Shown here: positions 3,304 through 55,418 of the stretch, piece after piece
Layout: every line of letters begins with the position of its first letter
Numbering within the stretch: the stretch's first letter is position 1
Origin: Mobula birostris
Lineage: Eukaryota
Direction: 5' to 3'
Assembly: GCF_030028105.1 (NCBI RefSeq)
Contig: NC_092376.1
Coordinates: 116,682,230 to 116,746,229 of the forward strand
DNA: 64,000 bases
Notes under the pieces: model-generated
What the model saw: the letters and a program-made list of their open reading frames with translations, nothing else
Databases searched by the model: none
What the model was told of the DNA's origin: nothing
Program-made: the position numbers and the translations under genes

Positions 3304-4559
3304 ACCGGGGTTTGGGTGGGTGAAACACCCCAACCTCAGGGATTTGGTGGGACCAAAGTCATATACACCCTAGACATACAAAGCCAGAGAAAGGTGGGTT
3401 TCTTGCTGTGGGATCCAGTGGCACATTAGTGAGGGGCTGATGAGCTACATTTCCATAGACACCCAGGAAAAAGGTTTCACATGCAAATATATATCGTTCT
3501 TTACCCAGACGTTGAGGAGAAGGCAGAACTTAGAAGAATGAGAGATGAGCTCATTGAAATGCATAAAATTCTGAGAGGGTGTGAAAGAGTAGGTGTCTGA
3601 GAAGCATTGCCTATCAAGAATAGAGATCATCATCTCAAAATAAGGGGTCATTATTCAGGATTGGGATGGAATGAAATTTATGAGGGAACAAAGGATATAT
3701 CTGGAGATTTACCAACAGTGTAAAACCAAGTGGGACTGGGAGCACAGAAGAGGATAGGAACAGGCAGACAAGCCCAGTGAGTGGACAAGAAAACCTGTCA
3801 CCTAAGAAAGGTTGCACTTGCCATAGGCAGAGTGCAAAGAAGATTCAGGGTTGGCAGGGTTTCTATATGAAGAGATATTGAGTAGACTTGAACTGTACTC
3901 TCTTCAACTTCAATAAAACATACTAAATCCTTCAAGGACTTGGCAGAACAAAATGCAAGGAAGGTGCTTTTCTAATTGAGGAACCTAGAACTTAAGGAAG
4001 GCCAGCCAGGACATACATGAGAAGATCTTTAATGTGGTGGTGAAGCTTTAGGCTGTAGATGCCTATTCTTTGTATTTGTTCAAAACACAGGTCGATAGAT
4101 ATCTGGACATGGAGTCAAGAGATACAGGACAGTGGTGGAAATGGCGCTGAGGTAGATGATCAACCACAATGATAATGAATGGTGGAACTGCCAGGAATGT
4201 CCAATGGACAACTCCTGCTTCTGTTTGTTATGGTCCTATGACAGCAGCATTAACACTGTTATTAACACCCAAAACCCATTGTTTTGTGTTGTATATCTGA
4301 TGCAACACACAAAACATTCCTCTCCACAGAATCTCAGACAATGCACTCTTTGTCTATATCACATTGTACTGTCCTGCCGTTTTCATCCCGCACATTATCC
4401 ATTCTACTGGATATACAACAGAGTAAACAATAAATCAGTATCGATTATGTTATTTCTTGTGCTGTCGGGGCAGAAGAGGGCCGTTCAGCCCATCGAGAAC
4501 ATATTATCTGCCCAAAATTCCCATCAGATACATCCCCCATATCTCACTGGAAACAGCTC

Positions 4560-4792
4560 CCCACAATTGTCCTGCCGTTAATTTACACTAGAGGCAGATT
4601 ACACTGACCGATTAACCTACCAAAGAATCATGTAATATTGAATTCTCTACCGTCCAAAACCCGGTCTCAGAGCACCGGAGAAAGCAAGGAAGGACATATG
4701 ATTTCCACACACTTAGCAGAGGAGCTCGGGATCGAACCAGAATCACAGGGGATGTGTGGAAAATACACTAGCATCTACACCGCTATGCCGCC
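4560..4792 (-). mobile_element. Degenerate tRNA-derived SINE (HE1-like) just downstream of IgV exon 1
   Basis: Minus strand starts GGCGGCATAGCGGTGTAG (A-box-like); B box GGTTCGATCCC at 4738-4728. Paralogous copy at about 22650-22903. Confidence 0.55.
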
Positions 4793-4830
4793 GTTTCTGA
4801 CACAGAATTATGTAACATTGAGCTGCTTAC

Positions 4831-5178
4831 CGCCCAAAACCCGGAGATTCAAATTCGTTTTCAGATCATTAAACGGTCCCGGAATCTGCACACGGCAGCA
4901 ATACCAGCCGCTATCTTCTCTCTGTAGATCATTTATAGTGGGCGACACATCTCCTGCCGCAATTCTACCACCAAGACTGTATCTCTGGGATGTTACAGAA
5001 GTTACTCTGTCTCCATTTGTTCCGAACAGTTCATCTCCCCAGTTCCTAACACCACACTGTCCCCGACCCCAGCACATCCCACTTTTGATATATTTTCGGA
5101 CAGAATAGCGGCACGGCAGTGTGATCGACTGTCCCGTGACTCCTCGCACGTTTGTCCCAGAGACGAAGGCGACTCGAC
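4831..5178 (-). CDS. TIM-family (HAVCR1/TIMD4-like) IgV exon, copy 1
   Basis: Acceptor ttcag|GT CGA and donor G|GTAAGC; 348 nt, phase 1-1. Translation has TLPCRYS...MCWGRGQC...TNG..V....RY.L.G.I..GDVS.TI..L..EDSGWYCCRVQIPGPFND, the TIM IgV signature. The exact orthologue cannot be assigned. Confidence 0.93.
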
Positions 5179-5660
5179 CTGAAGCAGTCCCGGAAAGAAA
5201 GTTACAGATGGCGCTGAATGGGATGATGAAAGAGGGTGTGTGCACAGTTTGAAAACCCGTCCCAGCATTGGGAAACTGATCCATTTTACCTGCTGCGAGG
5301 CATCGGGGGAATATTACGGAAAATCCCCAAATCGAAAGGACATCTCTGATCACAGATCCAGCCTCTCGTTCATTTTCCCACTCACATACCCACTGTGCTC
5401 CCAAACTAACCTTCACCGCAATAATCATGGATACACAAGGATCAGGTGTTCTACAGTCCATTCAGATCAGCACTGGTCAGTTCTCCAAGTTCACTCGCCC
5501 CGTCAGTTCACCCTTCAATCTTCAAACCCGGCAGACCCGGCACCACTCAGGGTCTAGGCTCCCTGACTCACACACCAGCTCCACCTCAATTACTGTATTC
5601 CAAGAAATTGTAACAACAAGATTGAGCAAGCTAATTCAATTCCTGCTTTCAGTAACGTAC

Positions 5661-5712
5661 CTAACAGAAGAAACATTATTGTCAAATGAGCCACAACGCC
5701 AGTAACAGCCAT
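5661..5712 (-). CDS. TIM-family gene copy 1, signal-peptide exon (MAVTGVVAHLTIMFLLL-G)
   Basis: Minus strand reads gacgcgATGG (good Kozak), then 17 hydrophobic codons plus 1 nt, then donor G|GTACGT. Phase 1 matches the IgV exon. Conserved in the paralog at 24021-24072. Confidence 0.85.
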
Positions 5713-7882
5713 CGCGTCGGACACTGTGGCGGCCGCTCTCCGTGTCGCTGCAGCAGATGCTGTGGCTGCGAGTTAAACTGTTGCTTTCGGCTTGTCGTGG
5801 ACAAGAGTTCCTTCCACACGGGAACACGGGTGTTGTTCACCGACACCCCCGAAAAATGAGCCAAATATTATCAAATACTCGGCCCCTCCCTGGCGTTACC
5901 ATCAAAGTCTAAATGCGTACGGATTTCCTTCAATTTCTTTCATTCCCGGCTTTTTGATAAGACAGTTCTGATCACAGATGTGACGCTACATCGTCAGAAA
6001 TTCGTGTCTGAAATGTCCATCAGTAACACGAGTGGGCAAGTGGGCAAGCGTCCTACTGGCTGTTTGAACTACTGTGTCGCTGGTCTGGTTGAGTCCTGTC
6101 ACTTTGTGTCACGTTTCAATGTTTTGTGCGTGAAGGGAACGGAGGGTGAAGGAGAGAGTGAGCGAAAGATCAAGAGACCCAAAAAGGGTGATTCCACTAT
6201 TTTCTGTTTTAACTCCAGCCTGGTCTGCACTGGCAGTCTAAATTTGGTCTGTCAACCTAGTTCAAGACTGGAGTCAAGGTCATTTGTTGGTGAGGAGTGA
6301 AGGGACTTTCAATCTCTGTCCAACTGTGAAGAGGCTTAATAGTGGCACAAGAGTCTCTGAACTGCAAATTGTAGCCGCAGTTTTACTTTATTCAATCATG
6401 TTGTAATAAGCATGGACACAGGGAGTGATACTGGTGCTGTGGTCAGACCTGGTACTAGGGATGACTACATCAGATGTCTAGTGCACTTCCCGGGCAGCTC
6501 ACAGGTAAAGGTGAGATGAAGATCAGACCCCAGTAATTGGGAGGTGACTGGCTGATTGATGTGAAGAAGAAATATCAAGGAGGTGGGGAGTCAGTGGGAG
6601 GTGGGGAAGTGATCGGAAGCATGGAGTGTGAGAAAGAGTGAGCAGGGAAAATGAACCATGATAATGGCCAGAAGGAGATGGACAGAAACAACAGAACAAG
6701 ACTGATTTCCCTAGCCAGGGTATTCAGTTATTTTTCATGCAGAACAACTGTAATTAAATGTAATGTAGGGCCTGATAATGATTTATATTGCATCATTAAA
6801 GCTAAAAAAAAATCAGGCAGACAGAATTGAACATAACACCAAAGAATGGAAGTATTAGGATGATGATTTACAGAGGGATAAAGATGCTCAGTGCCCCAGA
6901 TCCAGGCTGCAGATATATATTCATTCTGTCTCAGAATGCTGTGCCTCCAATTTATGAGGAGCGATGATAAGTGAGCAATTTGCAGACAAAGAGAGTGATT
7001 GTCTGAACACCTGGTGATGCAAAGAGCTGTTCAGATATATTCTGACCAAATGGACCACCGATGTGTTCAAACAATGACTTGATCTTGAACTCTCCAAATA
7101 TATTGAGAGTATACATTGAAGCGTGGGGGAAGGGTGGTGTGAATTGCTGTCTGTGACTCCAGTTATTCATTGTTCTCTCTCTGTGGCAGGTATGTCTCTT
7201 CATTGTTAAGAAACCAAAACTCTGCATGACCTGCCCAGTGCAGTCTTGCCAAGGCTCTGTACAACTACAGTACGACTCTGTTACTTCAATGTTCAAAGCT
7301 TCTAATAATAAATAGTGTAGCCCCCCTGGCCAGCCTCAGGGTCGCTTGGCTCGCTGTCGTCTAGGGAAACAGCCCTCAGCCCTGCCAAACTGGGTAACAG
7401 TTTGTGTGGATGCTGTGTGATGTACCCCACCCCGTCCAAATAACAGACAATACACCAGATATGATTAAGTGATTTACAGTTTATAGATATTACTGGAACT
7501 ATATAATTAATAGAGAATAAAATATAAAAGGAAAATCAAAGGCGCCACACTTATCAAAGTTCAATCTCTTTGTGCACAAACAGTTGGAGCTCAGGACCCT
7601 TCTTCTTCGCCCTGCGACCCCTCAGACCACCTCGCCTGGCCGCCTGGGACCAACAACGGTGGTCGACCAGATGCTCCACACGAGTCCGTCTCCGTCTCCT
7701 CTCCTCGCCAAACGTCCCGCTCGGGGTCCAACTCTGTTAGCGGATTCACAGCACCTGGTCCATCCTCTGTCCCTCTCTCCCGCCTTCTCCCCGAATATCT
7801 TACAGATACACCAAAAACATAACAACTACCGCAATTGGTTCATAACATCTTCTTATCAGTAACATGATTCAACCGACTGCTA

Positions 7883-10800
7883 ACATAGAACATAGAATAG
7901 TACAGCACAGTAGAGGCCCTTCAGCCCACAATGTTGTGCCGACCTTTAAACCCTGCCTCCCGTATAAGCCCCCACATTAAATTCCTCCATATACCTGTCT
8001 AGTAGTCTCTTAAACTTCACTAGTGTATCTGCCTCCATAAGTGACTCAGGCAGTGCATTCCACGCACCAACCACTCTCTGAGTAAAAAACCTTCCTCTAA
8101 TATCCCCCTTGAACTTCTCACCCCTTACCTTAAAGCCATGTCCTCTTGTATTGAGCAGTGGTGCCCTGGGGAAGAGGCACTGGCTATCCACTCTATCTAT
8201 TCCTCTTATTATCTTGTACACCTCTATCATGTCTCCTCTCATCCTCCTTCTCTCCAAAGAGTAAGCCCTAGCTCCCTTAATCTCTGATCATAATGCATAC
8301 TTTCTAAACCAGGCAGCATCCTGGTAAGTCTCCTCTGTACCCTTTCCAATGCTTTCACATCCTTCCTATAGTGAGGTGACCAGAACTGGACACATTACTC
8401 CAAGTGTGGCCTAACCAGAGTTTTATAGAGCTGCATCATTACATCGCGACTCTTAAACTCTATCCCTTGACTTATGAAAGCTAACACCCCATAAGCTTTC
8501 TTAACTACCCTATCCAACTGTGAGACAACTTTTAGGGATCTGTGGACATGTACTCCAAGATCCTTCTGTTCCTCCACACTACCAGGTATCCTGCCATTTA
8601 CTTTGTACTCTGCCTTGGAGTTTGTCCTTCCAAAGTGTACCGCCTCACACTTCTCCGGGTTGAACTCCATCTGCCACTTCTCAGACCACTCCTGCATCCT
8701 ATCAATGTCTCTCTGCAATCTTTGACAATCTCTACACTATCTACAACACCATCAACCTTTGTGTCGTCTGCAATCTTGCCAACCCACCCTTCTACCCCCA
8801 CATCCAGGTCATTAATAAAAATCAGGAAAAGTAGAGGTCCCAGAACAGATCCTTGTGGGACACCACTAGTCACAATCCTCCAGTCTGAATGTACTCCCTC
8901 CACCACCACCCTCTGCCTTCTGCAGGCAAGCCAATTCTGAATCCACCTGGCCAAACTTCCCTGGATCCCACGCCTTCTAACTTTCTGAATAAGCCTACCG
9001 TGTGGAACCTTGTCAAATGCCTTACGAAAATCCATATAGATCACATCCACTGCACTACCCTCATCTATATGCCTGGTCACCTCCTCAAAGAACTCTATCA
9101 GGCTTTTTAGACACGATCTGCCCTTCACAAAGCCACGCTGACTGTCCCTGATCAGACCATGATTCTCTAAATGCCTATAGATCCTATCTCTAAGAATCTT
9201 TTCCAACAGCTTTCCAACAAATGTAAGGCTCACTGGTCTATAATTACCCGGACTATTCCTACTACCTTTTTTGAACAAGGGGACAACATTCGCCTCCCTC
9301 CAATCCTCCGGTACCATTCTCGTGGACAACGAGGACATAAAGATCCTAGCCAGAGGCTCAGCAATCTCTTCCCTCGCCTCGTGGAGCAGCCTGGGGAATA
9401 TTCCGTCAGGCCTCGGGGACTTATCTGTCCTAATGTATTTTAACAACTCCAACACCTCCTCTCCATTAATATCAACATGCTCCAGAACATCAACCTCACT
9501 CATATTGTCCTCACCATCATCAAGTTCCCTCTCATTGGTGAATACCGAAGAAAAGTATTCATTGAGGACCTCGCTCACTTCCATAGCCTCCTGGTACATT
9601 TTCCCACCTTTATCTCTAATCGGTCCTACCTTCACTCCTGTCATCCTTTTTTTCTGCACATAATTGAAGAATGCCTTGGGGTTTTCCTTTACCCTATTCG
9701 CCAAGGCCTTCTCATGCCCCCTTCTTGCTCTTCTCAGCCCCTTCTTAAGCTCCTTTCTTGCTTCCCTATATTCTTCAATAGACCCATCTGATCCTTGCTT
9801 CCTAAACCTCATGTACGCTGCCTTCTTCCACCTGACTAGATTTTCCACCTCACTTGTCACCCATGGTTACTTCACCTTACCATTCTTTATCTTCCTCACC
9901 GGGACAAATTTATCCCTAACATCCCGCAGGAAGTCTCTAAACATCGACCACATGTCCATAGTACATTTCCCTGCAAAAACATCATCCCAATTCACACCCG
10001 CATGTTCTAGCCTTATAGCCTCATAATTTGCTCTTCGCTAATTAAAAATTTTCCTGTCATCTCTGATTCTATCCTTTTCCATGATAATGCTAAAGCCCAG
10101 GGAGCGGTAGTCACTGTTCCCCAGATGCTCACCCACTGAGAGATCTGTGACCTGACCCAGTTCATTACCTAGTACTAGATCTAGTATGGCATTCCTCCTG
10201 GTTGGCCTGTGCACATACTGTGACAGGAATCCATCCTGGACACACTTAAACCTTTGGAACTAATCAGGTGCTAATCAATATTAGGGAAGTTAAAGTCACC
10301 TATGATAACAACCCTGTTATTTTTGCACCTTTCCAAAATCTGCTTCCCAATCTGCTCCTCTGTATCTCTGCTGCTACCAGGGGGCCTATAGAATTCCCCT
10401 AGTAGAGTAACTGCTCCTTTCCTGTTCCTGACTTCCACCCATATTGACTCAAAAGAGGATATGGTGGGCAGGCTACATTACCCCACCTTTCTGTAGCTGT
10501 AATGGTATCCCTGACCAGTAATGTCACCCCTCCTCCACTTTTTCCACCCTCTCTATCCCTTTTAAAGCACTGAAATCCAGGAATATTGAGAATCCATTCC
10601 TGCCCTGGTGCCAGCCAAGTCTCTGTAATGGCCACTACATCATAATTCCATGTATTTATCCAAGCTCTCAGTTCATCACCTTTGTTTCTGATGTTTCTTG
10701 CATTGAGGTACACACATTTCAGCCCTTCTACCTTACTGTCTTTACACCATTTATTCTGCTTCTCTTTCCTCAAAGTCTCTCTGTAAGTTAGATCTGGCTT

Positions 10801-11900
10801 TACTCCATGCACTTCTTTCACTGCTCTATCGCTCTGGATCCCATCCCCCTGGCAAATTAGTTTAAACCCTCCCAAACCATGCTAGCAAACTTATCAGCAA
10901 GGATATTGCTCTCCCTTGAGTTCAGGTGCAACCCATCCAATCTGTACAGGTCCCACCTTCCCCAGAAGAGATCCCAATGATCTAACAATCTAAAACCCTG
11001 CTCCCTGCACCAAATCCTCAGCCACGCATTCAGCTGCCATCTCCTCCAATTCTTACCATCACTGTCACGTAGCACTGGCAGCAATCCTGAGAACGCCACC
11101 CTTGAGGTCCTGTTCTTCAGCCTTCTGCCTAGTTCCCGAAACTCACACTTCTGGACCTCATCCCTCTTTCTGCCTATGTCGTTGGTCCCAACATGTATCA
11201 CGACTTCTGGTTGCTTTCCCTCTCGTACCAGGATGTTGTGCACCCGGTCAGAGACATCCCGGACCCTGGCACCAGGGAGGCAACAAACCATGCGGGTGTC
11301 CTTCTCACGTCCACAAAATCTCCTGTCTGCTCCCCTGACTATAGAGTCTCCAATGACGACAGCTCTCCTCTTCTCCGTTCCACCCTTCTGCACCACAGGG
11401 TCAGACTCAGTGCTGGAGGCTCTGCCACCGTGGCTCACACCTGGTCGGTTGTCCCCGCCAACAGTATCCAGGACGGTAAACTTATTATTCAGGGGAATGG
11501 CTACAGAGGTGCTCTGCACTACCTGTCTGCTCACCTTCGCTTTCCCCGCTCTGACTGTCACCCAACGGCCTGCTTCCAACAGCCTAGGTGTGACTACCTC
11601 CCTGTAGCTCTCATCTATGACTGCCTCATTCTCCCTTATGAGTCGAAGGTCATTCAGGTGCTGCTCCAGATTCCTTACACGGTCTTCCAGATTGCCCAGC
11701 CGTATGCACTTCTGGCAGATGTTGACTCTGTGGGAGAGGGGAGTTCCCCCAAGACTGCCACATCTCACATGAGAGGCACATCACCATCCCAGGAGACATT
11801 GTAAAAACTAACTGCGAGCTAGCTTGTCCTCCGCCTCTTCTCGTCGAAGCCTCTCGAGTCATAGCCTCAAAGCTCCACTCCTTCACTGGCCCACTCATGC
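7883..11900 (-). mobile_element. Near full-length CR1 LINE inserted in the Gypsy 3' LTR
   Basis: ORF1 10857-11768; endonuclease fragment 10399-10875 (YLNARNIRNK, AITETWL); RT fragments 8598-9860, 8395-8718 and 7946-8257; tail AACATAGAACATAGAA at 7882 onward. Confidence 0.96.
10857..11768 (-). CDS. CR1 ORF1 (Cys-rich/coiled-coil region + SGNH esterase), open 303 aa
   Basis: CQKC, leucine-rich heptads, VVIGDSIVRG, CLPGARV, HVGTND and DGLHLN motifs. Confidence 0.9.
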   Translation of the reverse strand: MRCGSLGGTPLSHRVNICQKCIRLGNLEDRVRNLEQHLNDLRLIRENEAVIDESYREVVTPRLLEAGRWVTVRAGKAKVSRQVVQSTSVAIPLNNKFTVLDTVGGDNRPGVSHGGRASSTESDPVVQKGGTEKRRAVVIGDSIVRGADRRFCGREKDTRMVCCLPGARVRDVSDRVHNILVREGKQPEVVIHVGTNDIGRKRDEVQKCEFRELGRRLKNRTSRVAFSGLLPVLRDSDGKNWRRWQLNAWLRIWCREQGFRLLDHWDLFWGRWDLYRLDGLHLNSRESNILADKFASMVWEGLN

Positions 11901-12572
11901 ACGGGAAGGACTTTCTCAGCAGTTAACATAACAAAGAAGCCCTTTCAATTAGACTACGCAGGGACATAAAAAAAGAAACCCCTTACACTCTCCCCCCACC
12001 AAATAAAGTCATGTCCTCATGACTTCTAAATAACTCGCCAACCAGTCCTATAGACATAGAAACCCATCCAGATACACACAGTGACATTGCTCCCCAAACA
12101 ATGGACCTTCCGCCCGTCCACGGGCGCTACATAGGCCAACCTGTCTGAGAGCTCCCTAATCCTCCGAGACCTCGGTACCCCCTCACCTAAACCCTAGAGG
12201 CTCAGACACTTCTAGGGATACCTCAGGCCTGCTTGCTGAGTACTCTTTCACTCAGGCCACCATTACAACTCGGAGCCCCCTGTCCCGTGTCCGGGTCCCC
12301 GCTTCTTTTCCTTCCTGATCCTACCGTAACTCAGACTGCCCACAGCTAGCCCTCCCCACTACACCTGAGAAGGGCCAAAGGTCTCTTCCTCAATGACGGG
12401 GAAGTTAGCGAAAGGCAGCACGTACCACATGTCCAGCACATCATCCTTCGAATCCGTATTCTTCCTCATTCCCTTGATTGGTAGCTGCTGTTTGAGTTTC
12501 TCCAAACTGAAACATTTCGCTGAGGCTACCCCTTCAGCCTCCTGTTTTTCCATCCTGATGACGTCTTCCAAG

Positions 12573-14024
12573 TCAACTCTGAGTTCCTCCAGCATTTAAA
12601 CTGTCGATAGTCATCTTCAGGTTCCTTTCATGCATCCGCCTCCCTTTTCCGAAATCTGTCCTCCATTTCTTCACCTCCTCGGGAGTGTAGTCAAAATCCC
12701 CTCCCCGGGCTCTCGGTTTTCTGTTGGCTTTAATCAGAACACTTCCTTGATCTTCCCCAACCTGTAAGTCTTTCAATCTTTTCTGAATCAACTTCTTGAG
12801 TTTCTGCTGATCCCTTCGAAGGTGGGTCATTGTTTCTTCTCCCTGGATTAGTTCATCAGTACGTGACCGCAGTGTCAGCTCGGAATTCCGTTGCCCCTTC
12901 TCCATGTTGATGAGCGTGAATTCCAAGTCTGCATTGGTCGTCCCACAAGTGCGGCATTCAGTCTCCGGCTGGCATTTCAGAGCACTCAGTCCAGCGGTGC
13001 AAATCCCCTCTCTCCCCTGAGTCTCATTCAGATTGTCGACCTGGGTTTCCATCCCCAGGTCCACCACCGTCGGTTCCAACACCAGGAAGTTCAACTGGTA
13101 TGTCGGGTCGTTTTTCTCACATTGCATCAAACTCCTCCGGCCAAAAACTCCTCTACATTTGACGTTTCGCTTCGGTCGCCTGGGCTCAGCCACTCGCCTC
13201 GCTTCATAGTCCCCCCAGGTGAATCCAAGCTCTAGGCGGTCATCCACATATGCCAAAACTCCACACACCTTCACTTCCCCCATGGTCTTCCTCATGCCCC
13301 GCGGGAAGGATGCAGGGGCTCCAAATATGCCCTTGGGCATCTTTTCCGATCGGAAGAATCCTAGGGAACTAATAACGGCCATCTCCAGCTCGACAGCTGC
13401 ACTCCTCGGGATCTGGCAACATCCACCCCTCAGATCCAGCACATGAAACCATGTCGCATAATCCACACACACGCTGCCTTCATCTTCCATGCCACCAGGG
13501 TTCAGTTGCCGCGACCTCTCTCTCACTGAGGTGTTTTCAGCGGTCAACTCCCCTCCCTCGTGGTAGTTCGGAGCGTCTACTAAGAGGGTCTCACCCTCAG
13601 CTGCTCTCCCCAGGCCGTACCACCGCTGGGTCTCGTTTAAATTCGGTACCGGCTCAAGGCTGCTACACATGTCCTCAGAAGCAACTCGACATGCTGGGAG
13701 CCCAGACAATGCCCCCATGAACTCCAGGGTCATTAACCAGTCATCGTCTTCTGGATAACTACTGGCACTGGTACCCAAAATCTCTGGTGCCCTTGCGGTT
13801 GTCAAGGGTAAATGCTTCAGACACCGGTTGTAAAACGAACTGTACAACAACTTGACCTGCACCCCGGGGTCGAGGATGACTTTAACATCGCTTCCCTCTA
13901 TCCATAACGACACCCTGGGGCGTGGTCCCTCTAAGCCTTCAGGAATAGGGTCTTTTTCTTTCGGAAGTTCATTGGTACATTGCTGGGAACGTGCTTCCTC
14001 AGAGACCCCAAGCCGTTCCCCCAC
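12573..14024 (-). CDS. 483-aa Gypsy pol-derived ORF (protease-like ILDPG, RT-like MPKG...YVDD), heavily diverged and deleted
   Basis: ORF track; [14 protein letters not shown] and [19 protein letters not shown]...LAYVDD align by eye with Gypsy protease and RT motifs. Confidence 0.75.
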
Positions 14025-16488
14025 TGGTCCTCCACTAAGTTTCCCGACACCTCTCTGATCAGCTGAACAACTGATCCCCTGAAATGATCCCCCGGCAGTG
14101 CAAGCAATTTAGTCGCCCTCCTAGCCAGAGAAGACACACTGAAAGCTTTCCCCCCCTCTTTCAAATAACTGACAGCTGTCACTACGGTGTAAGTGAACCT
14201 GACAGCTCTAACACCGTCACCAGCCCGCCTACTTAAACTTTCAGCCAATCCCTGTCGCTCTTCCTCAACAGAGCACTGTCACTCATCTAACAACTGAGAG
14301 ATCCGCTCCGCCCACGTCTTGCACGCCTCCGCTCCTCTTGGGGTGGATACTATCCCAAGCACCAGGCAGAGCCTGCCAGAGCTAGAACATTCATTCACAG
14401 ACACTACCACCAAATCAGACCACACTTTCCTCTCTCTCCCAACAGCACCTCCAACTCATCAATGCTAGTCTGAACTCGAACAAAGACCTCACCCTCCACG
14501 CATACAGCGATAACCAGCAAATAACCCACAGAGACTCACATTACTGATTTAAACAGGGCAACCACACAGCATACCAGTAGATCCAATCCCAGACAAAAGC
14601 CCACAATGTAGCCCCCTGGCCAGCCTCAGGGTCGCTCAGTTCGCTGTTGTCTAGGGAGACAGCCGTCGGCCCCGCCAAACTGGGGAATCAGTTTGTGTGG
14701 ATGCTGTGTGATGTACCCCACCCCGCCCAAATAACACACAATACACCAGATATGATTAAATGATTTACAGTTGGTAACTTATTATTTCCACCTGCACAGT
14801 GACCTGAAAAGATGTGTGTTTCATCACATCTTGTTTCTAAATTTCAGCACCACACAATCACTCAGAATTTAAGAAAAACTACTTTTACATGATTGGCACT
14901 AAATTGGATGATCTCCCATATGTCTTCATTGTTTTCCACCTGCCAAGTTCTTGTCATCTCACTGAGTTTCTTCATAGAACATTTTGGACAGATTTCCGCA
15001 AGGTGATGAAATCAAGATTACTTCTACTTGTGTCACTGATTTGATTACCTTGTTGCTCATTCTGTGAACAGACACAGTACCATTAATTTGGTCATATTAA
15101 GGTCTTTTGGTGTTGTCATACCTTTGATTATTTTTATGAACAAGAAATTAACTCGATTCCTAACCAATTGGTAATTAAGTTAATAAATCTGCAATAATGA
15201 TCTACATCTGATCATCACCAAATCCCTGTCTGTGGAAACAGGTTCCCAATGTCTGCTCAGAGTGATTGGCAATTTATAAAATGCAAGTTTTACTTCCACT
15301 TTACTGCAGACATTCCCAGCCTGCCTTATGCAAATATCTTCACCAAATCTTAAGGTTCTAAACATAAACATTTCAATTAAAATCAATTTCAAGGCATACT
15401 TATTAACATTTATCACCTACATTGCAGTTTATCCAAACAAAAAGACATTGATATTTGAGATGTAAGTAAGCAACATCATTTCCATGGTGTGTAATAAAGC
15501 ACTTATTTGTGGCTAACAGAACTGTGTGCTTGTCTGTGTCACAGAAGAAACATTAAATTTATTTTTATGTTTTTCCATGCTTGTCATGCAATTTTATTCA
15601 CTTACTTCAAGCTTATATAACTTGTAGAAAAGATTCGGGACAACAGGTGGATATTAAATATTTAGACCATTGGAGGATCTTTAAAGTGCCACTGTTAGCT
15701 GTGATTAGGACACATTGTTTTGGGGTTAATTCTCTAATCTGCATTGGTTAACGGAGAAAACAGATGGAATAAGCTTGAGTTGTGAATCTGCAGGTGGATG
15801 GGCTTCATAGTCACAGGGTTGGACCCTCTTCTCTGCGTAACATATATCAAAGACTTAGCTCAAGGGCAAAATTTCCAAGATTTAACACCATGAGATTTAC
15901 AGAGAATGTAAGGAGAAATCAGTGGAAAAGGGAGGTCTGGCTAAATAGATAAGGACATAATGAATGGGATATAATGTGGTGAAATGTGACATGATCCACT
16001 TCAGGAGGAATATAAGAAAAACAGATTTTTGTTATACGGTGAGTGATTGGACATTCAAGGGATCTGGGTGTCTGTGTTCATGGTCACTGAAGGCTAAGTA
16101 AGCCAATAGGCAGATAAACAAAAAACTTGATCAAAAGAAATAAATATTCATACATTGATTCCAGGGAAACAGATGTTCGGCGCACAGCAGAGCTTGGAAG
16201 AATAGGAGGAGAGCTGATTGAAATGCATACAATTCTGAGAGGGCTGCAAATGGCAGGTGTAAGAAATGCTTTGCCTGTAGGGATCATCATGTCAGAATCT
16301 TAAAATAAGGTATCATCGTTCAGGACTGAGATGCAATGAAATATATGAGGGAAAAAGTTATATGTTTTGAATTTTCCAACAGTGTAAGACCAAGTGGGGT
16401 TGGGAGCACAGAGCAGGATGTGAAGAGGCTACAAGGTTATATAAACAAGCTCAGTGAGAGAGCAAGAAAATGACAAATGGAATACAAT

Positions 16489-18510
16489 ATAACTGGAGCA
16501 AGGGGAAATATGAGGCTATCAGGCAGGATCCTGGAAGCATAAATTGAGAACAGATGTTCTCAGAGAAATGTAAGAAAAATGGGGCAAATGTTCAGGGGAT
16601 ATTTGTGTGGCTTTCAGCATAGGTACATTCCAGTGAGACAGGGAAAGGATGGTAGGGTACAGGAACCATGGTGTACAAAGGCTGTTGTAAATCTAGTCAA
16701 GAAGGAAAAAAAAACTTACGAAAGGTTCAACATGCTAGGTAATGATAGAGTCCAGAAGATTATAATGCTAGCAGGAGGGATAAGAAGTGAGAGAATAGGA
16801 CCAATCAAGTGTGACAGTGGAAAAGTTTGTATGGAACCAGGGGAGATAGCAGAGATACTTAATAAATACTTTGCTTCAGTATTCACTACGGAAAAGGATC
16901 TTGGCGATTGTAAGGATGACTTACAGCGGACTGAAAAGCTTGAGCATGTAGAAATTAAGGATGTGCGGGAGCTTTTGGAAAGCATCAAGTTGGATAAGTC
17001 ACCGGGATCAGATGAGATGTACCCCAGGCTACTGTGGGAGGTTGGGGAGGAGATCTTTGCATCATCAATGGGGACAGGAGAGGTTCTGGAGGATTGGAAG
17101 GTTGCGGATGTTGTTCCTTCATTCACGAAAGGGAGTAGAGATAGCCCAGGAAGTTATTGACCAGTGGTTGGTAAGTTGATGGAGAAGATCCTGAGAGACA
17201 GTATTTATGAACATTTGGAGAGGCATAATATGATTAGGAATAGTCAGTATGGCTTTGTCAAAGGGCAGGTCGTGCCTTACGAGCCTGATTGAATTTTTTT
17301 GAGGGTGTGACTAAACACATTGATGAAGGTAGAGCAGTAGATGATGTGTATATGGATTTCAGCAAGGCACTTGATAAGGTACCCCATGCAAGGCTTATTG
17401 AGAAAGTAAAGAGGCATGGGATCTAAGGGGACATTGCTTTGTGGATCCAAAACTGGCTTGCCCACAGAAGGCAAAGGGTGGTTGCAGACGGGTCTTATTC
17501 TGCATGGAGGTCAGTGACCAGTGGTGTACCTCAGGGGTCTGTTCTGGGACACCTACTCTTTGTGATTTTTATTATGACATGGATGAGGAAGTGGAGGGAT
17601 GGGTTAGTAAATTTGCTGATGACACAAAGGTCGGGGTGTGTTGTGGATAGTGTGGAGGGCTGTCAGAGTTTACAGCAAGATATCGATAGGATGTAAAACT
17701 GGGCTGAGAAGTGGCAAATGGAGTTCAACCCAGGTAAGTGTGAAGTGGTTCATTTTGGTAGGTCAAATATGATGGCGGAATATAGTATTAAGGGTAAGAC
17801 TGTTGGCAGTGTGGAGGATCAGCAGGATCTTGGGGTCCGAGTTCATAGGACACTCAAAGCTGCTGTGCAGGTTGACTCTGCGGTTAAGAAGGCATGCGGT
17901 GTATTGGCCTTCATCAATCGCGGGACTGAGTTTAGGAGCCGAGAGGTAATGTTGCACCTATATAGGAACCTGGTCAGACCCCACTTGGAGTACTGTGCTC
18001 AGTTCTGGTCGCCTCACTACAGGAAGGATGTAGAAAGCATAGAAAAGGTGCAGGGGAGATTTATAAGGATGTTGTCTGGATTGGGGAGCATGCCTTATGA
18101 GAATAGGTTGATTGAACTCGTCCTTTTCTCCTTGGAGCGATGAAGGATGAGAGGTGACCTGATAGAGGTATATAAGATGATGAGAGGCATTGATTGTGTG
18201 GATAGTCAGAGGCTTTCTCCCAGAGCTGAAATGGCTAGCATGAGATGGCACAGTTTTAGGTGCTTGGAAGTTGGCACAGAGGAGATGTCAGGGTTAAGTT
18301 TTTTATGCAGAGAATGGGCTGCCAGCGACAGTGGTGGAGGCAGATACGATAGGGTCTTTTAAGGGACTCCTGGATAGGTATATGGAACTTTGGAAAATAG
18401 AGGGCTATGGGTAACTCTCGGTAATATCTAAGGTAAGGACATGTTCAGCACAGTTTTGTGGGATAAAGGGCCTGTATTGTGCTGTAGGTTTTCTACGTTT
18501 CCATGTTCCG
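16489..18510 (+). mobile_element. CR1 LINE, 5'-truncated
   Basis: RT fragments; ACAAT on both sides (16484-16488 and 18511-18515); absent at the paralogous site ~28215. Confidence 0.93.
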
Positions 18511-18969
18511 ACAATGTGAAAAAATTTAAACCTTATCTATTCTGGTGCAATTAATAGAAAAGTAAATTAGTTATTAAATGGAGAGTGATTACATAATGTT
18601 AAAGTTTATAGAGACCAAGGTCTGATGTAGGTGCAAATAGTCGATTATCATTTGCAAGAGAATCTGAATACAGCAATGAGCAAGTCTTGCTGTACTTGTA
18701 AAATGGCTTGGCAAAAGCACCCAAGAGTATATTGGACACTTATGACCTCTTACCTAAGAAAGGATGTACATGCCATAGGCAGAGTGCAATAATGATTCAG
18801 GATTGCTAGGTTTTCTAAGTGAGAAGATATTGAGTAGACTGGGATTTTACTTTCTTCTGCTTCAACAAGACATTAAAAATCCTTCAAGAACTTGGCAGAA
18901 AAAAATGTAAGGAGGCTGTTTTCCCTGCCTGAAGAACCAAGAACTTGAGACAGGCCAGCCAGAACTTAC

Positions 18970-19110
18970 ATGAGAAACAAAAGAAAATCTGCTGATGCTG
19001 GAAATCCAAGCAACACACACAAAATGCTGGAGGTACTCCGTAGGCCAGGCAGCATCTATAGAAATCAGTACAGTTGATGGCTTGGGCCAATACCTTTTAT
19101 CAGAACTGTA
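18970..19110 (-). repeat. Short Penelope-associated repeat with degenerate hammerhead motif
   Basis: aaaatctgctgatgctggaaatccaagcaacacacacaaaatgctggagg...; paralog at 28670-28810 and a related copy at 47480-47620. Confidence 0.6.
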
Positions 19111-22100
19111 CATACTATAAGACTATAAGACATAGGAGCAGAATGAGGCCATTCAGCCTATTGAGTCTGCTTCACCATTTTATCATGGCTGATCCTGGAT
19201 ATCGCTCAACCCCATACATCTGCCTGGATGCCATCTCCTTTAGTGCCCTGACCCATCTGGAAACAATCAATTTCCGCCTTAAATATACACACAGACTTGG
19301 CCTCCACTGCAGTCTGTGGCAGAGCATTCCACAGATTTACTGCTCTCTGGCTAAAAAAAAAGTCCTCTTTACCTCTGTTCTAAAGGATCACCCCTCAATC
19401 TTGAGGCCGTGGCTGTCATGGTCCAGTCTGTGAAGTCCGCATTCTGGTTCACAGTCTGGTCCATCATTCCTTATTCCAGGTTTTCCGGTTTTTCCTTGTT
19501 CTGTTGTGTGCTCTAATTGAGGCACATGATTCTCATTTTGGGCTAGCTACATAAATAGCTCCTTGATTCAGCTTCATTTGCTGGACTGTTCCCTTCCCTT
19601 CCCCTTCCTCCTGAGGCCTTGTCTGCAACCTCACCTGTATCACTGTCAATTTCTACTGCTGGAGCAAGACCTGAGCCTTGCTGTGTCTAGATAAGGAACT
19701 GTCTATTGTTGTTTGGAACTGTCCCTATGTCCACACCTTTGCTAGGTAGGTGCGGCCGTTTGCTGCTACCTTGTGTTGGGAACCATCTCTGTGTCCACAC
19801 CTTCGCTAGGTGGGTCCGGCCATTTGCTGCTACTTGTGTTGGGAACTGTCTGTGTCCACGCCTTCGCTAGGTAGGTCCAGTTGTTTGGCTCTACCTAGTG
19901 TTGGGAACCATCTTGTTGTGTTCAGCATTCTGTGTATGGGTCCTGGCCCTATGCCCTGTTCCCAAGGAGGGATCCTTGCTCTGTGTTCCATGTTCCTGTC
20001 TCTCCAGACCAAGGCTCTGTGTTTTGCATTCCTGTCTCCCAAGATTACCAAGGCTCCGTGTTCTGTGTTCCAGTTCTGCCAAGACCAAGTCCTTGTGTTC
20101 CAGTTCTCCCAAGACCAAGTCAAGGCTTTGTGCTCTCGCCCAGCCCAGGAGTACCTCATCCTGCTCAGGAAAGCCTTGAAGAATCCAAGCCTCATCCAGT
20201 CCTGTAGTCACGTCATGTCCTTGCCTAGTTCCGGGGTCCGAGCCTGAATCAAGACCCAGGTTCTGGGTCCTTGTCCAGTTTCTGGCTCAGCGTCCAAGCC
20301 CAGGCTCCTAGTTCCTAGTTCCTTGTCCTGGTCCCGCTTTCCTAGTCAAGTCCTAGCCCAGGCCCTGAATCCTTGTCTCGTCCAGGGCTTGTGTCATGTC
20401 CAGCATCCTTTCTTTCCCACTTCCCTTGCTTTCTTGACAAACCTAGTCCTGTTCCTTGTACCTCAGTGTCTGTGGCTTGCATTTGGGTCCACTCCCAGCG
20501 CCCCCTGTATGACAGAACACTCCAGCCAGACGAGGACCCAGCGACACAGAGACTGTCTTTCAACTCTCAATATCCTGGGTTCTCTCTTGTTGAATGCCCC
20601 CAACCCGCCCGTGTCGTCCATAGTTTGGGATTGCTTGTTTGGTCGCCAGGAGGCTCCCGTGGTGGTGGTGGGGAGTGGGTAGTACTGTCATGGTCCAGTC
20701 TGTGAAGTCCGCATTCCATTCACAGTCCGGTCCATCATTTCTTATTCCAGGTTTTCCGGTTTTCCCTTGTTCTGTTGGGTGCTCTAATTGAGGCACCTGA
20801 TTCTCATTTTGGGCTGGCTATATAAATAGCTCCTGGGTTCAGCTTCATTTGCTGGACTGTTCCCTTCCTCCTGATGCCTTGCCTGCATTCTCTGCCTGAT
20901 GCCTTGCCTGCAACATGCCTGTGTCCTCACCTGTATTACTGTCAAGTTCTACTGCCGGAGCAAGACCGGAGCCTTGCTGTGTCTAGATAAGGAACTGTCT
21001 ATCATTGTTTGGAACTGTCTCTGTGTCCACGCCTTCGCTAGGTAGGTCCGGCAGTTTGCCGCTACCTAGTGTTGGGAACCATCTCTATGCCCACACCTTC
21101 ACTAGGTAGGTCCAACCATTTGCCGTTACCTTGTGTTGGGAACCGTCTCCGTGTCCACGCCTTCGCTAGGTAGGTCCGGCCATTTGCTGCTACCTAGTGT
21201 TGGGAACCATCTCTGTGTTCTGCATTCCAGTCTCCCAAGATTACCGAGGCTCTGTGTTCTGTGTTACAGTTCTGCCAAGACCAAGACCCTGTGGTCCAGT
21301 TCTCCCAAGACCAAGTCAAGGCTTTGTGTTCTTGCCCAGCCCAAGATTACATCGTCCTGCCCAGGAAAGCCTCAAAGAATCCAAGCCTCGTCCAGTCCTT
21401 TAGCCAAGTCATGTCTTCGCCTAGTCCTGGAGTCCGAGCCCGAGTCAAGACCCAGATTCTGGGTCCTAGCCCAGTCTCTGGCTTGGCGCCCATACCCAAG
21501 CCTTGAAGAACCCAACCCATATCCAATCCTGTAGCCACGTCTTAAAGAAGCCAAGACATGTACAGTCCTGTAGCCACATCATAGCCTAGTTCCGGGGTCC
21601 AAGCCTGAGTCAAGACCCAGGTTCAGGGTCGTTGTCCAGTCTCTGGCCCGCTTTTCTTGTCCTGGTCCCTCTTTCCTAGTCAAGTTCTATCCCAGGCCCT
21701 GAATCCTTGTCTCGTCCAGGGACTGTGTCATGTCCGGCGTCCTTTCTTCCCCACTTCCCTTGCTTTCTCGACAAACCTAGTCCTGTTCCTTGTACTTCAG
21801 TGTCTATGTCTTGCATTAGGGTACGCTCACAGCGCCCCCTTGTATGATTGTGCCCTATAGTTCTGGATACTCCCACCATAGGAAACATTCGCTCTACATC
21901 CACCTTATCTAGTCCTTTAACATTCTGTAGGTTTCAATGATATCTTCCCACATTTTTCTAAATTCCAGTGAGTACAGGCCCAAAGCTGCCAAATGCTCCT
22001 CACATGTTAACTCCTTGAATCCTGAAATCATACCCGAGAACCTCCTCTGTAATCTCTCCAATGACAACACATCCTTTCTGAGCTAAGGGGCCCAAAGCTG

Positions 22101-22140
22101 TAGCCAATACTCTCAGTGCAGCCTAATTAGTATCTTATAA
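19111..22140 (-). mobile_element. Old CR1 3' fragment split by the mini-LTR element (19111-19413 and 21850-22140)
   Basis: CATAGGAGCAGAA tail and CR1 3' RT-like text; an uninterrupted paralog is at 31253-31677. Confidence 0.75.
19414..21849 (+). mobile_element. LTR-heavy mini-retrotransposon: LTR 19414-20514, 171-bp internal, LTR 20686-21849
   Basis: Both LTRs start TGTCATGGTCCAGTCTGTGAAGTCCGC. The internal region starts GAACACTCCAGCCA..GGACCCAGCG and ends GGTCGCCAGGAGGCTCCCG..GGGGAGTGGGTAGTAC (PPT). Flanks GTGGC/GTGCC. Confidence 0.9.
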
Positions 22141-22941
22141 AGCTCAGCAGAAGAAGATCTTTCTGTGATCGTGATCCTTTAGTTTACAGATGCCCATTCT
22201 TCATATTTGTTCAAAACACAGATTGATAGATGTCAGGACATGGAGTCAAGGGATACAGGACAATGATGGAAAATGGTGCTGAGGTAGAAAGAAGATCAAC
22301 CACATTCTGAATGAATGGTGGAACAGCCAGAAGTGCCCAGTGGACAACACCTATTTCTATTGGTTATGCTCCCATGACAGCAGCATTAACACTGTTATTG
22401 GCACCCTAAGCCCATTATTTTGTGTGGTATATCTGATGCAACACACAAAACAATTCTCTCCAGAGAATCTCAGACTATGCACTCTTTGTCCATATCACAT
22501 TGCACTGTCCTGCCGTTGTCATCCTGCACATTATCCATTCTACTGGATATACAACAGAGCGAACAATAAATCAGTATTCATTGTGTTATTTCTTATGTTC
22601 TCGGGGGTAGAAGAGGGGCGTTCAGCCCATCGCGACCATATCAGCTACCCAAGATTCCCATCAGATACATCCCCCATATTTCCCTGGAAATTTAGCTCCC
22701 CGCCATTGTCCTGCTGTTAATTTACACTAGAGGTAGATTACGCTGACCGATTAATCTACTAACCTGTTCTTGCGATCTCAGAGCACTGGAGGAGGCAAGG
22801 AAGGGCATATGATTTCCGCACACTAAGCAGAGGAGCTTGGGATCGAACCAGAATCACAGGAGATGTGTGCAAAATACACTAGCATCTACACCGCTATGCC
22901 GCCATTTCTGACACACAATCATGTAATATTGAGCTGCTTAC

Positions 22942-23289
22942 CGTCCAAAACCCGGAGATTCAAATTCGTTATCAGATCATTAAACGGTCCCGGAATCCGC
23001 ACACGGCAGCAATACCAGCCGCTATCTTCTCTCTGTAGATCTTTTATAGTGAGCGACACATCTCCTGCCGCAATTCTACCACCAAGACTATATCTCTGGG
23101 ATGTTACAGAAGTTACTCTGTCTCCATTTGTTCCGATCAACACGTGTCCGCAGCCGCTTAAAGGGCACTGTCCCCGACCCCAGCACATCGCACTTTTGAC
23201 ATATTTTCGGACAGAATAGCAGCACGGCAGTGTGATCGACTCTCCCGTGACTCCTCGCACGTTTGTCCCAGAGACGAAGGCGACTCGAC
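22942..23289 (-). CDS. TIM-family IgV exon, copy 2
   Basis: Acceptor ttgcag|GT CGA and donor G|GTAAGC; 348 nt, open frame. Translation MCWGRGQCPLSGC...GWYCCRVRIPGPFND retains all six TIM cysteines plus one extra. Confidence 0.93.
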
Positions 23290-24020
23290 CTGCAATAATC
23301 CAGGGAAAGAAAGTTACAGATGGCGCTGAATGGGATGATCAGACGGGTGTGTCCACAGTTTAGAAACCTGCCCGAGCAACGGGAATGTGATCCATTTTAC
23401 CTGCCGGGCAGCATCTGAGGAATATTACGGAAAATTTCTACGTATTCAAAAGCATGTGGATATTATTAGGTATTTCCCACATCCTGAAACAGCCACCCCT
23501 CAGTTGACCCTTATTAGGATGTGGTGATCGACCAACATTTCTGTAGTTGTGACACAACCGATAGTCCAGCGGTAACATTTCAGAGAGCTGTTCAGTCACT
23601 GACACAGAAACATGCAGGGAAGGTACGAAGATCAGATTGTGATCTCGAGTATTGAAATCATTCTCCTCTCTTGCCATTTTGGATCTGTGATTCATTTTTC
23701 TACTCACATACACACTGTGCTCCCAAACCTTCACCGCAATGATCGGGGATATTCCGAGCTTTGGTCTTGTTTCTTAGTCCATTCAGATCAGCAATGATCA
23801 GTCCTCCAAGTTCACTCACCCCGTCAATTCACCATCAACACCCCCCCCCCCACATCCATTAATCTGCAAAAACCAGCAGCGCCGGGCATCACTCGGGGTG
23901 TCGGCTGTATCCCTCCCGGCTCTAACACTCACACACAGTCTCCATCTCAACTACTGCGTCCAAGAGGTTAAAACAACAAGATTGAACAAGCTAATTCAAT
24001 TCCTGCTTTCTGAAACGTAC

Positions 24021-24072
24021 CCAACAGAAGAAACATTATTGTCAAATGAGCCACAGCGCCAGTAACAGGCAT
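24021..24072 (-). CDS. TIM-family gene copy 2, signal-peptide exon (MPVTGAVAHLTIMFLLL-G)
   Basis: Paralog of 5661-5712; same 52-nt length and G|GTACGT donor. Confidence 0.85.
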
Positions 24073-25817
24073 CGCGCCGGGCACTGTGGCGGCCGCTCTC
24101 CGTGTCGCTGCAGTTGCTGCTGTGGCTGCGAGTTAAACTGTTGCTTCCGGCTTGAAGTGGACAAGATTTCCTTCCACAGGAACACAAGTGTATTTCACCG
24201 ACACCCCAGAGAAATGAGGCAAGTGTTATCAAACAGTCGTCTCCTCCCAGGCGTTACCATCAAATTCTAAACGTGCATGATTTTCCTTCACCGTTGCTTT
24301 CAGTTCCCAGTTTTGAGATAAAACAATTCTTCCGACTACAGATGTGACGCGACATCGACAGAAATTCATGTCTGAAATGTCCATCAGTAACACGAATGGG
24401 CAAATTGCCAAGTATCCAACTGGCTGTTCGAACTGCTGGGTCGCTGGTCCGGTTGAGTCCTGTCACTTTGCGTCACGTTTCAATGCTTCGTACGTGAACG
24501 GAACCGAGGGTGAAGTAGAGAGTGAGTGAGACCCAGATAAGGTGATTCCACTATTTTCTGTTTTAACTCCAGCCTTCTCTGCACTGGCAGTCTAAATTTG
24601 GTCTGTCAACGCAGTTCAAGACTGGAGTCAAGGTCATCTGTTGCTGAGGAGTGAAGGGACTTTCAATCTCTGTTCAACTGTGAAGAGGCTTAATGGTGGC
24701 ACAAGCGTCTCTGAACTGCAAATTGTAGCCGCAGTTTTACAATCATGTTGTAATAAGCATTGACACTGGGAGTGATACTGGTGCTGTGGTCAGACGTGGT
24801 ACTAGGGATGCCTACATCAGATGTCTGGCGCACTTCCCAGGCAGCTCACAGGTAAAGGTGAGATGAAGATCAGACCCCAGTAATTGGGAGGTGACTGGCT
24901 GATAGATGCGAAGAAGAAATATCAAGGAGGTGGGGAGTCAATGGGAGGTGGGGAAGTGATTGGAAGCATGGAGTGTGAGAAAGAGTGAGCAGGGAAAATG
25001 AACCATGATAATGGCCAGAAGGAGATGGAAAGAAACAACAGAAGACTGATTTGCCCAAGCCAGGGTATTCAGTTATTTTTCACGCAGAACAACTGTAATT
25101 AAATGCAATGCAGGGACTGATAATGATTTATATTGCATCATTAAAGCTAAAAAAAATCAGGCAGACAGAATTGAACATAACACCAAAGAATGGAAGTATT
25201 AGGATAATGATTTACAGTGTGATCAAATTGATTCCATGAAAAAGATCCAGGCTACAGATATATATTCATTCTGTCTCAGATTGCTGTGCCTCCAGTTTAT
25301 GAGAAACAATGGTAAGCAGGCAATTTCCAGATGAGAATAAATGTCTGTACACTGGCTGATGCAAAGGGCTGTTCAGTTATATTCTGACCAAATGGACGAC
25401 TAATGTGTTCAAACCATGACTTTATCGTGAACTCTCCAAATATATTCAGCACTCAGTACATAGAAGACTGGGGGAAGGGATCTGTGACTCCAGTTATTCA
25501 TTGCTCTCTCTTTGGCAAGTATGTCCTTTCATTGTTATGAAACCAGAACTCTCCACTACCTGCCCAGTGCAGTCTTGCCAAGACTCTATCCAACGACAGT
25601 ATGACTCTGTGACTCCTATGTTTAAAGCTTCTAATAATAAATGGTAACTTATTATTTGCACCTGGAGAGTCTCCTGAAGAGATGTGAGTATCATCACACC
25701 TTGTTTCTAATGTTCAGCACCATCCAATCACTTAGCATTTAAGTAAAATTATTTTTACATTATCAGCACTAAAATGGATGATCTCCCATATGTCTTCATT
25801 GTGCTCCATCTGTCAAG

Positions 25818-31247: not shown

Positions 31248-31674
31248 AAAACCATAGGACATAGGAGCAGAATGAGGCCTTTCAGCCCATTGACCCTGCT
31301 TCGCCATTCTATCATGGCTGATCAAGAATCCCACTTAACCTCATTCACTTGCCTTCTCGCCATATCCTGTGATGCCCTGACCAATCAAAAAGTGATCAAC
31401 TTCTGCCTTAAATATATGCACAGACTTGGCCTCTGCTGGAGTCTGTGGCAGAGCATTACACAGATCTTCTACTCTCTGGCTAAAAAAAATTCCTCCTTAC
31501 CTCTGTTGTAAAGAGTCACCCTGAATCTTGAGGCTGTGCTCCCATCGGAGGAGACATCCGCTCGACATCCACCCTATCTAGCCCTTTCAACATTCTGTAG
31601 CTTTCAATGATTTCTTCCCACATTTTTCCAAATTCCAGTGAGTACAGGCCCAAAGCTGCCAAACGCTCCTCACA

Positions 31675-31770
31675 TGTCCTTTTAGCGGCTGCGGACACGT
31701 GCTGATTAGAACAAATGGAGACAAAGTAACTTCTGTAACATCCCAGAGATATAAACTTCGTGGTAGAATT
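31675..31770 (+). pseudogene. Isolated 96-nt TIM IgV fragment (CC' loop to D strand)
   Basis: Translates CPFSGCGHVLIRTNGDKVTSVTSQRYKLRGRI, close to copy 2 (CPLSGCGHVLIGTNGDRVTSVTSQRYSLGGRI) but on the opposite strand. Flanked by a CR1 fragment and a Gypsy integrase fragment. Confidence 0.9.
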
Positions 31771-55082: not shown

Positions 55083-55418
55083 GTCGAGTCACCCCTGGCA
55101 CTGGATCAGTAGTGCAAGGAGTTACGGAATAGTCGATCACACTACTGTGCCACTACTCTGTCAGCATCTAAATTAAAAGTGAAATGTGCTGGGGTCGGGG
55201 ACAATGTCCTGCTATGGGCTGTAGAGGTTAACTGGTTAGAACAAATGACGATACAGTAACTTCTGTAACATCCCAGAGATATCGTCTTGCTGGTAGAATT
55301 GTGTCGCTCACTATAAATCATCTACAAAGAGAATATAATGACTTGCATTGCTGTGGTGTGGAGATTCCTGGACTGCTTAATGATCTGAAAATGAACTTGA
55401 ACCTCCTGGTTTTGGACA
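55083..55418 (+). pseudogene. TIM IgV pseudogene exon
   Basis: Acceptor acag|GT CGA GTC; three in-frame stops (TAG, TAA, TAA); 12-nt deletion relative to the intact copies; donor changed to GCAAGC; ends HCCGVEIPGLLNDLKMNLNLLVLD. Upstream 54740-55082 resembles intron 1 of the intact copies; no leader exon seen. Confidence 0.92.

Follow-up and report, generated by a model that had tools for sequence, protein, structure and literature searches.

What does a leader exon followed by an immunoglobulin variable-type (IgV) exon belong to, when no exons for a mucin stalk, transmembrane (TM) helix or cytoplasmic tail are to be seen beside it? The question is raised by a stretch of 64,000 nucleotides of the 4.0-Gb genome of Mobula birostris (C8:116682230-116746229; hereafter the window), in which two such TIM-like cassettes, copy 1 and copy 2, lie in tandem. 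The original prediction was that they may be alternative variable first exons, spliced in the manner of the clustered protocadherin and UGT1A genes to one shared constant region left of the window, with secreted single-domain proteins or partial duplicates as alternatives. Our analysis indicates that copy 1 opens a six-exon receptor gene, and that copy 2 is, on balance, a spare partial duplicate, an orphan cassette upstream of that gene and most likely no regular source of protein. Positions given below are those of the window, and C8 coordinates are used to the left of it; a cassette's name consists of c and the three leading kb digits of its position beyond 116 Mb, which makes copy 1 c687 and copy 2 c705.

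Both cassettes lie on the minus strand. Copy 1 consists of a leader (signal peptide) exon of 52 nt at 5661-5712, which ends in phase 1 at a GT donor (5660-5659), and an IgV exon of 348 nt at 4831-5178, bounded by an AG acceptor (5180-5179) and a GT donor (4830-4829). The leader exon of copy 2 (24021-24072) is likewise 52 nt long, with its ATG and GT donor intact, and its IgV exon (22942-23289) again has 348 nt and the same layout of acceptor and donor. These lengths put both exon ends in phase 1; both IgV exons are open frames, and each has a conserved polypyrimidine tract and AG acceptor. The two leaders are 18,360 bp apart. RNA contigs of paralogous cassettes show a joint corresponding to 23287->24019, although a cut two positions beyond it would fit equally well, and they have a loose end at 22942. 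Since these spliced contigs end at the homologous exon borders, the splice positions of the cassettes are real splice sites in this TIM-like family. Coordinates, exon lengths and RNA borders together confirmed the predicted pair of intact minus-strand cassettes with canonical phase-1 splice sites, about 18 kb apart. Self-BLAST placed the cassettes within duplicated segments of 86-90% identity, 4020-7313 around copy 1 and 22152-25642 around copy 2. No tRNA was found by ARAGORN in the SINE-like (short interspersed element) stretch directly downstream of the IgV exon.

The encoded domain is of the TIM type. Pfam V-set matched the two IgV exons with E values of 3.5e-16 and 1.9e-18, and a phmmer search of PDB returned TIM-1 (2or8), TIM-4 (5dzn, 5f7f, 3bi9), TIM-2 and TIM-3 at the top. 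The solved IgV domains of TIM-1 and TIM-4 were matched at E 1e-28 to 4e-33 (best 3.8e-33), followed by pIgR at 1e-12; the closest solved relatives are mouse TIM-1 and TIM-4. The FG-loop motif P-F-N-D aligns with W-F-N-D of TIM-1 and TIM-4, and so would include the Asn-Asp of the metal-dependent phosphatidylserine site. The ray proteins resemble the TIM family (HAVCR1/TIM-1, HAVCR2/TIM-3, TIMD4/TIM-4) in the F-N-D of the FG loop and in what comes after the IgV domain: a stalk rich in Ser and Thr, one TM helix and a tail that is short. The Cys pattern of the TIM domains is recognizable as well, with a deviation in each copy: copy 1 has five of the six canonical TIM Cys, with a Trp aligned to the fourth Cys of TIM-1 and TIM-4, whereas copy 2 has all six and an extra one (R24C) beside the B-strand Cys.

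Only in the case of copy 1 is the IgV domain followed by a mucin stalk, TM helix and cytoplasmic tail, and the exons for these lie outside the window, to its left. We placed the exons of RefSeq XP_072120702.1 (model P0007) by exact peptide match. Its residues 1-18 match the leader exon of copy 1 exactly and residues 18-134 match the IgV exon at 100%; on the same minus strand it continues into a first mucin exon (mucin1, C8:116673531-448, 9 kb left of the window) and a second (mucin2, C8:116668395-336, 14 kb left of it), and ends in an exon at C8:116640637-311 that contributes 109 residues read from a tandem repeat. Skipped by the model are two intact minus-strand exons of this constant set, which belongs to what we call unit III: a TM exon at about C8:116665308-201, which has lost 3 nt in frame and encodes a helix containing an Arg, and a tail exon at C8:116662120-049, encoding 25 residues without Tyr. 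They sit between mucin2 and the last exon of the model, which lies 28 kb beyond. The mucin, TM and tail exons of unit III are all intact, with AG and GT sites present, and the repeat-derived last exon of XP_072120702.1 is probably an artefact of annotation or modelling. The orthologue in M. hypostoma, P0156, is a complete protein of 242 aa that shares the mucin1 signature with the gene of copy 1, and its gene spans 25,979 bp, as compared with 25,893 bp from the leader of copy 1 to the tail of unit III. The intact exons and the matching span indicate that a TIM-like gene of six exons and of the activating type begins with copy 1. A constant region to the left of base 1, as had been foreseen, was in this way located: a single set of mucin1, half-IgV pseudo-exon, mucin2, TM and tail, 9-26 kb from base 1, to which copy 1 is joined in XP_072120702.1.

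The half-IgV pseudo-exon between mucin1 and mucin2 occurs once in each of three constant sets (C8:116670557-116670796, 116603803-116604042 and 116480092-318, all on the minus strand); it lacks the N-terminal half and is skipped in all models. In all three sets the TM exon (in the other two at C8:116596839-949 and 116474840-950, minus strand) encodes an Arg inside the helix and is followed by a short tail without Tyr. As read from the translated exons, this combination is the hallmark of adaptor-coupled activating receptors, and it sets the body of unit III apart from mammalian TIM-1, TIM-3 and TIM-4. A Tyr-bearing tail as in TIM-1 and TIM-3 is absent from unit III, and within the cluster it is limited to a second type of body (models P0155 and P0163), which has a neutral TM helix. 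One transcript model departs from this scheme at its 3' end: the last exon of the 204-aa isoform P0158 (C8:116475120-188) resembles a fragment of the reverse transcriptase of a long interspersed nuclear element (LINE), and this transposon-derived alternative end removes the TM helix. The same element is present in all three units (116597121-195 and 116665478-552 in the other two).

If copy 2 had downstream exons of its own, they would lie in the 17 kb between the cassettes. We searched window 5713-22939 by tblastn with 168 TIM-family proteins and obtained only a match to a tandem repeat (minisatellite) and noise, with no private 3' exons; a blastn search of the same interval with each constant exon plus its 150-bp flanks gave a single decayed mucin1 relic. 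The claim that usable mucin, TM and tail exons are missing between the cassettes therefore held, and private 3' exons for copy 2 were rejected on these searches. The relic, downstream of copy 2 at 15469-15570 (minus strand), is 75% identical to a working mucin1 exon and its acceptor region, has a 1-nt deletion, and has lost both its donor site and its richness in Ser and Thr. A homologous block upstream of copy 2 (27132-27403, minus strand) carries an in-phase TGA and no donor, and further such blocks are found downstream of copy 1 (C8:116681726-961) and at four more places further left. The occurrence of relic blocks beside other cassettes implies that the old repeat unit was leader-IgV-mucin1. 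We also considered the relics as real exons; five of the long-intron type (see below) are open for about 26 codons, but they have no donor, are terminated by a stop and appear in no protein, and this candidate was rejected.

The arrangement in the window is repeated in its surroundings. We analysed the 274 kb of C8:116472231-116746229 and placed the manta and ray proteins along them; coverage of the cluster's right half came from two 3.3-kb loci and whole-genome matches. On the minus strand, and in the order of transcription, unit III comprises copy 2 and copy 1 upstream of mucin1, half-IgV pseudo-exon, mucin2, TM and tail (model P0007). Unit II has c646, c636 and c616 upstream of the same five constant exons (model P0157, a complete 242-aa protein), and unit I has c511 and c500 upstream of the same five (model P0158). 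In whole-genome searches, TM/tail sets of this type numbered exactly three; a single set of the second, Tyr-tailed type lies on the plus strand at 116.88-116.91 Mb and is served by cassettes c816 and c862. Cassettes, as had been predicted, outnumber constant sets: 2:1 in unit III, 7:3 on the minus strand and about 10:4 across the cluster, the last count including an IgV pseudo-exon at 55082-55414 on the plus strand of the window, which is inverted and diverged, is interrupted by three stops and lacks a short piece. That pseudo-exon and an IgV exon fragment at 31642-31773 (plus strand) are remnants of cassettes of the opposite orientation. Extra partial IgV copies, in tandem with a period of about 338 bp, accompany two unit II cassettes, two of them in c646 (C8:116645638-116646664) and one in c636 (116635763-116636448).

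The cassettes differ in the length of intron 1, which is long in copy 2, c646, c636, c511 and c862, and short in copy 1, c616, c500 and c816. Intron 1 of copy 2 is colinear with those of c646, c636 and c511 (88-92% identity) and matches those of copy 1, c616 and c500 only in patches. This division into a long-intron and a short-intron lineage implies that two cassettes were already in place before the unit was triplicated. A different history is written in the CC' loop region of the IgV exon (23104-23203 in copy 2, 4993-5092 in copy 1), which exists in two versions, alpha (GVMNCGDELIRT-like) and beta (PLSGCGHVLIGT-like). Alpha is carried by copy 1, c646a, c636a, c511 and c862, and beta by copy 2, c616, c500 and c816, so that in unit III each intron lineage has the version that the other lineage has in units I and II; the CC' patch of short-intron copy 1 resembles that of the long-intron cassettes, and long-intron copy 2 has the beta patch. 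Indeed, the IgV exon of copy 2 is 97.7% identical to that of c616, 89 kb away (99% in the CC' patch), against 81-87% in the flanks, a case of gene conversion. Taken together, the alignments indicate patchwise gene conversion at what would be the ligand-binding CC' loop.

This exchange bears upon how the open frame of copy 2 is to be read, because a conversion tract suffices to account for it and selection is not required. The sister cassettes in the same upstream position have fared worse: c646a and c636a, the first IgV exons of c646 and c636, carry a common in-frame TAA and c511 is frameshifted, with leaders and splice sites intact, so that three of the four upstream-position cassettes are dead. 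The four letters that are unique to copy 2 are all nonsynonymous, R24C among them. Two possible signs of function were tried and proved uninformative. The ratio of nonsynonymous to synonymous substitution rates (dN/dS) is about 1 whether a cassette works or is broken, and most lineage-specific changes in the expressed cassettes, too, are nonsynonymous; an intact leader is also kept by the broken c636 and c511.

Copy 2 was absent from all M. birostris protein models found (64-507 aa), and the RefSeq models of units I to III begin at the cassette nearest to the constant exons (c500, c616 and copy 1, respectively). Expression data came from four small runs of the same species, one of them from the same sample as the best DNA match, available only as contigs, from which rare variants are dropped. 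The contigs are spliced, with intron 1 removed, which identifies the four runs as RNA. Joining of a variable unit to a constant exon was seen for c500, the cassette nearest to the constant exons of unit I, which is matched at 20 of 20 diagnostic letters by spliced sequence that continues into mucin1 of that unit. Other spliced contigs match c616, c862 and a c636/c646-like pseudo-cassette; a contig in run X28 carries the c636/c646 stop letter, and this pseudo-cassette appears to be transcribed. The letters that are copy 2's own (A 22971, C 22998, T 23042 and A 23221 on the plus strand) were found in no contig of the four runs, and all contigs over 22998, 23042 and 23221 carry the other letter. 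Copy 1 was likewise unmatched by any contig in these runs. Transcripts from copy 2, on which the original prediction depends, were thus not encountered among the contigs of four small RNA runs.

We consider partial duplication, which had been named as one of the alternatives, to fit these results best. The window holds the 5' end of unit III, one member of a tandemly expanded cluster of TIM-like receptor genes, with the leader and IgV exons of copy 1 as exons 1 and 2 of a six-exon gene and the rest to the left. Copy 2 would go back to an old event in which exons 1-3 (leader, IgV and mucin1) were duplicated in tandem; its mucin1 copy then decayed, and it would never have had TM and tail exons of its own. 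The whole unit would have been triplicated after the two-cassette layout arose, with the cassettes in the position of copy 2 dying in both sister units. In the simplest account, a recent conversion tract from a working c616-like cassette overwrote the IgV exon of copy 2 and so may have given it its open frame. What we observed directly is where the exons lie, that there is one constant set, that conversion has left a mosaic, that the sister cassettes are broken, and that neither the models nor the RNA contigs contain copy 2; its functional silence is what we infer.

Several observations weigh against reading copy 2 as a spare duplicate. Its leader, IgV exon, acceptor and donor are all intact, and its upstream region is kept as well as in the expressed paralogues. 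The RNA evidence is thin, consisting of four small runs of unknown tissue whose contigs lose rare variants, and the annotated copy 1 is also unseen there, so it may just be that unit III was not active in the material sampled. In RefSeq model P0155 and in the Hypanus sabinus models P0001 and P0152 (gene span 51 kb), IgV exons from two different cassettes are combined, which suggests that upstream cassettes can be used in this TIM-like family. Moreover, dN/dS is near 1 between working cassettes too and does not single out copy 2.

These two-cassette models bring up the first alternative, that copy 2 contributes to a stacked isoform with two IgV domains. In transcripts from the promoter of copy 2, leader 2 and IgV 2 would be spliced in frame onto the IgV exon of copy 1, skipping leader 1, which has no acceptor, and then onto the shared mucin, TM and tail exons. 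The mechanics allow it: each IgV exon begins and ends in phase 1, and the two join in frame as ...RVLDG|RVAFVSG..., as in the models, and the donor of the copy 2 IgV exon would meet the acceptor of the copy 1 IgV exon first. There are precedents in M. birostris, where P0155 joins the IgV exons of c816 and c862, 46 kb apart, and in H. sabinus, where P0001 and P0152 have two IgV domains, followed by a TM helix and tail of the same type. In the manta, however, a two-IgV product is not conserved among receptors of this type, the upstream cassettes being broken in both sister units; the RefSeq model of unit III begins at copy 1, and the RNA contigs contain no transcript of copy 2. We regard stacking as unlikely. 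If copy 2 is transcribed at all, stacking onto the IgV exon of copy 1 is likelier than exclusive use of either cassette, and both are less likely than the orphan duplicate.

Exclusive use, the second alternative and the one originally preferred, would have either copy 2 or copy 1 spliced onto the one constant region, and the resulting receptors would differ in their ligand-binding loops. Unit III does have one constant set and two intact cassettes that differ mainly in the CC' patch (beta in copy 2, alpha in copy 1), and, as in the clustered protocadherin and UGT1A genes, several tandem 5' units of the same orientation lie upstream of one set of constant exons. In the second type of receptor, M. 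hypostoma P0163 joins a c816-like IgV exon straight to the constant exons, whereas M. birostris P0155 adds the next IgV exon, a contrast suggesting that a downstream IgV exon can be skipped; the H. sabinus isoforms X1 and X2 differ in the leader exon only. To use copy 2 alone, however, the strong, conserved acceptor on the IgV exon of copy 1 would have to be bypassed. The manta units, unlike those of the protocadherin and UGT1A genes, are not single, donor-only first exons; they consist of two exons, the IgV exon having an acceptor, so that the rule by which one of many is chosen is missing. They also differ in number and state, with two to three units per constant set, most of the upstream ones being pseudo-exons, and no transcript linking copy 2. 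With copy 2 in no model, its letters in no RNA contig and three of four upstream-position cassettes dead, we think exclusive choice quite improbable. Of the original prediction, then, the shared constant region stands, in that one set serves a unit with two cassettes and copy 1 is joined to it in RefSeq, whereas the part given to copy 2 as an alternative variable first exon of the protocadherin/UGT1A kind was not upheld.

A secreted single-domain protein, made of leader, IgV and eight residues by reading through the copy 2 donor, is very improbable: the frame is indeed open for eight codons past the donor to a TGA (open reading frame 22919-23260) and the 140-aa H. sabinus model P0151 consists of leader and IgV only, but we found neither polyadenylation nor transcript support nor a short M. 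birostris model, and copy 1, whose model is spliced, has the same read-through frame.

The remainder of the interval between the cassettes is largely repetitive. A LINE retrotransposon at 8395-11768 (minus strand), with RVT_1 and Exo_endo_phos domains and an esterase-type (GDSL) ORF1, fills part of it. Adjoining this element is an open frame of 483 aa (12573-14024, minus strand) without a Pfam match, possibly gag-like and derived from a retroelement. A second LINE fragment (16579-18362, plus strand) is a copy of the element at 1518-3298 and 40652-42439, and minisatellite arrays with periods of 30-64 occupy 19710-21577; it is from a related array, to the left of the window, that the RefSeq model derives its odd last exon.

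KIR, LILR, CD300 and SIRP are paired activating/inhibitory clusters of immunoglobulin receptors, with partial duplicates and gene conversion. The manta cluster resembles them in that near-identical ectodomains are carried on two bodies, one with a short tail and an Arg-bearing TM helix (P0157), the other with a neutral TM helix and a Tyr tail (P0155 and P0163), and in having pseudo-exons and a patchwise exchange centred on the ligand-binding loop. It differs in its domain, which is of the TIM type and is neither the C2 domain of KIR and LILR nor the V domain of CD300. Judged by these comparisons of sequence and layout, the manta locus looks more like a paired activating/inhibitory cluster than like a protocadherin or UGT1A locus.

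The TIM receptors of mammals are a small and stable family, with one IgV domain per gene. The manta cluster differs, with about ten IgV cassettes on four constant sets and some models with two IgV domains. In the manta and the stingray the family thus appears as an expanded cluster with activating-type and Tyr-tailed bodies, two-IgV forms, spare cassettes and loop-centred exchange; a literature search found nothing on TIM genes in cartilaginous fish, nor on this expansion. For the gene map, copy 1 is to be placed in a complete six-exon gene and copy 2 treated as an unproven spare cassette. More speculatively, and we would call this a doubtful proposition, the ray TIM cluster may be modular, its upstream cassettes either spliced onto a shared body, alone or stacked, or kept as a standing conversion store that shuffles the two CC' loops. 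If so, a family of phosphatidylserine receptors would have been turned in rays into a diversified family of paired receptors, with loops shuffled among activating-type and inhibitory-type members.

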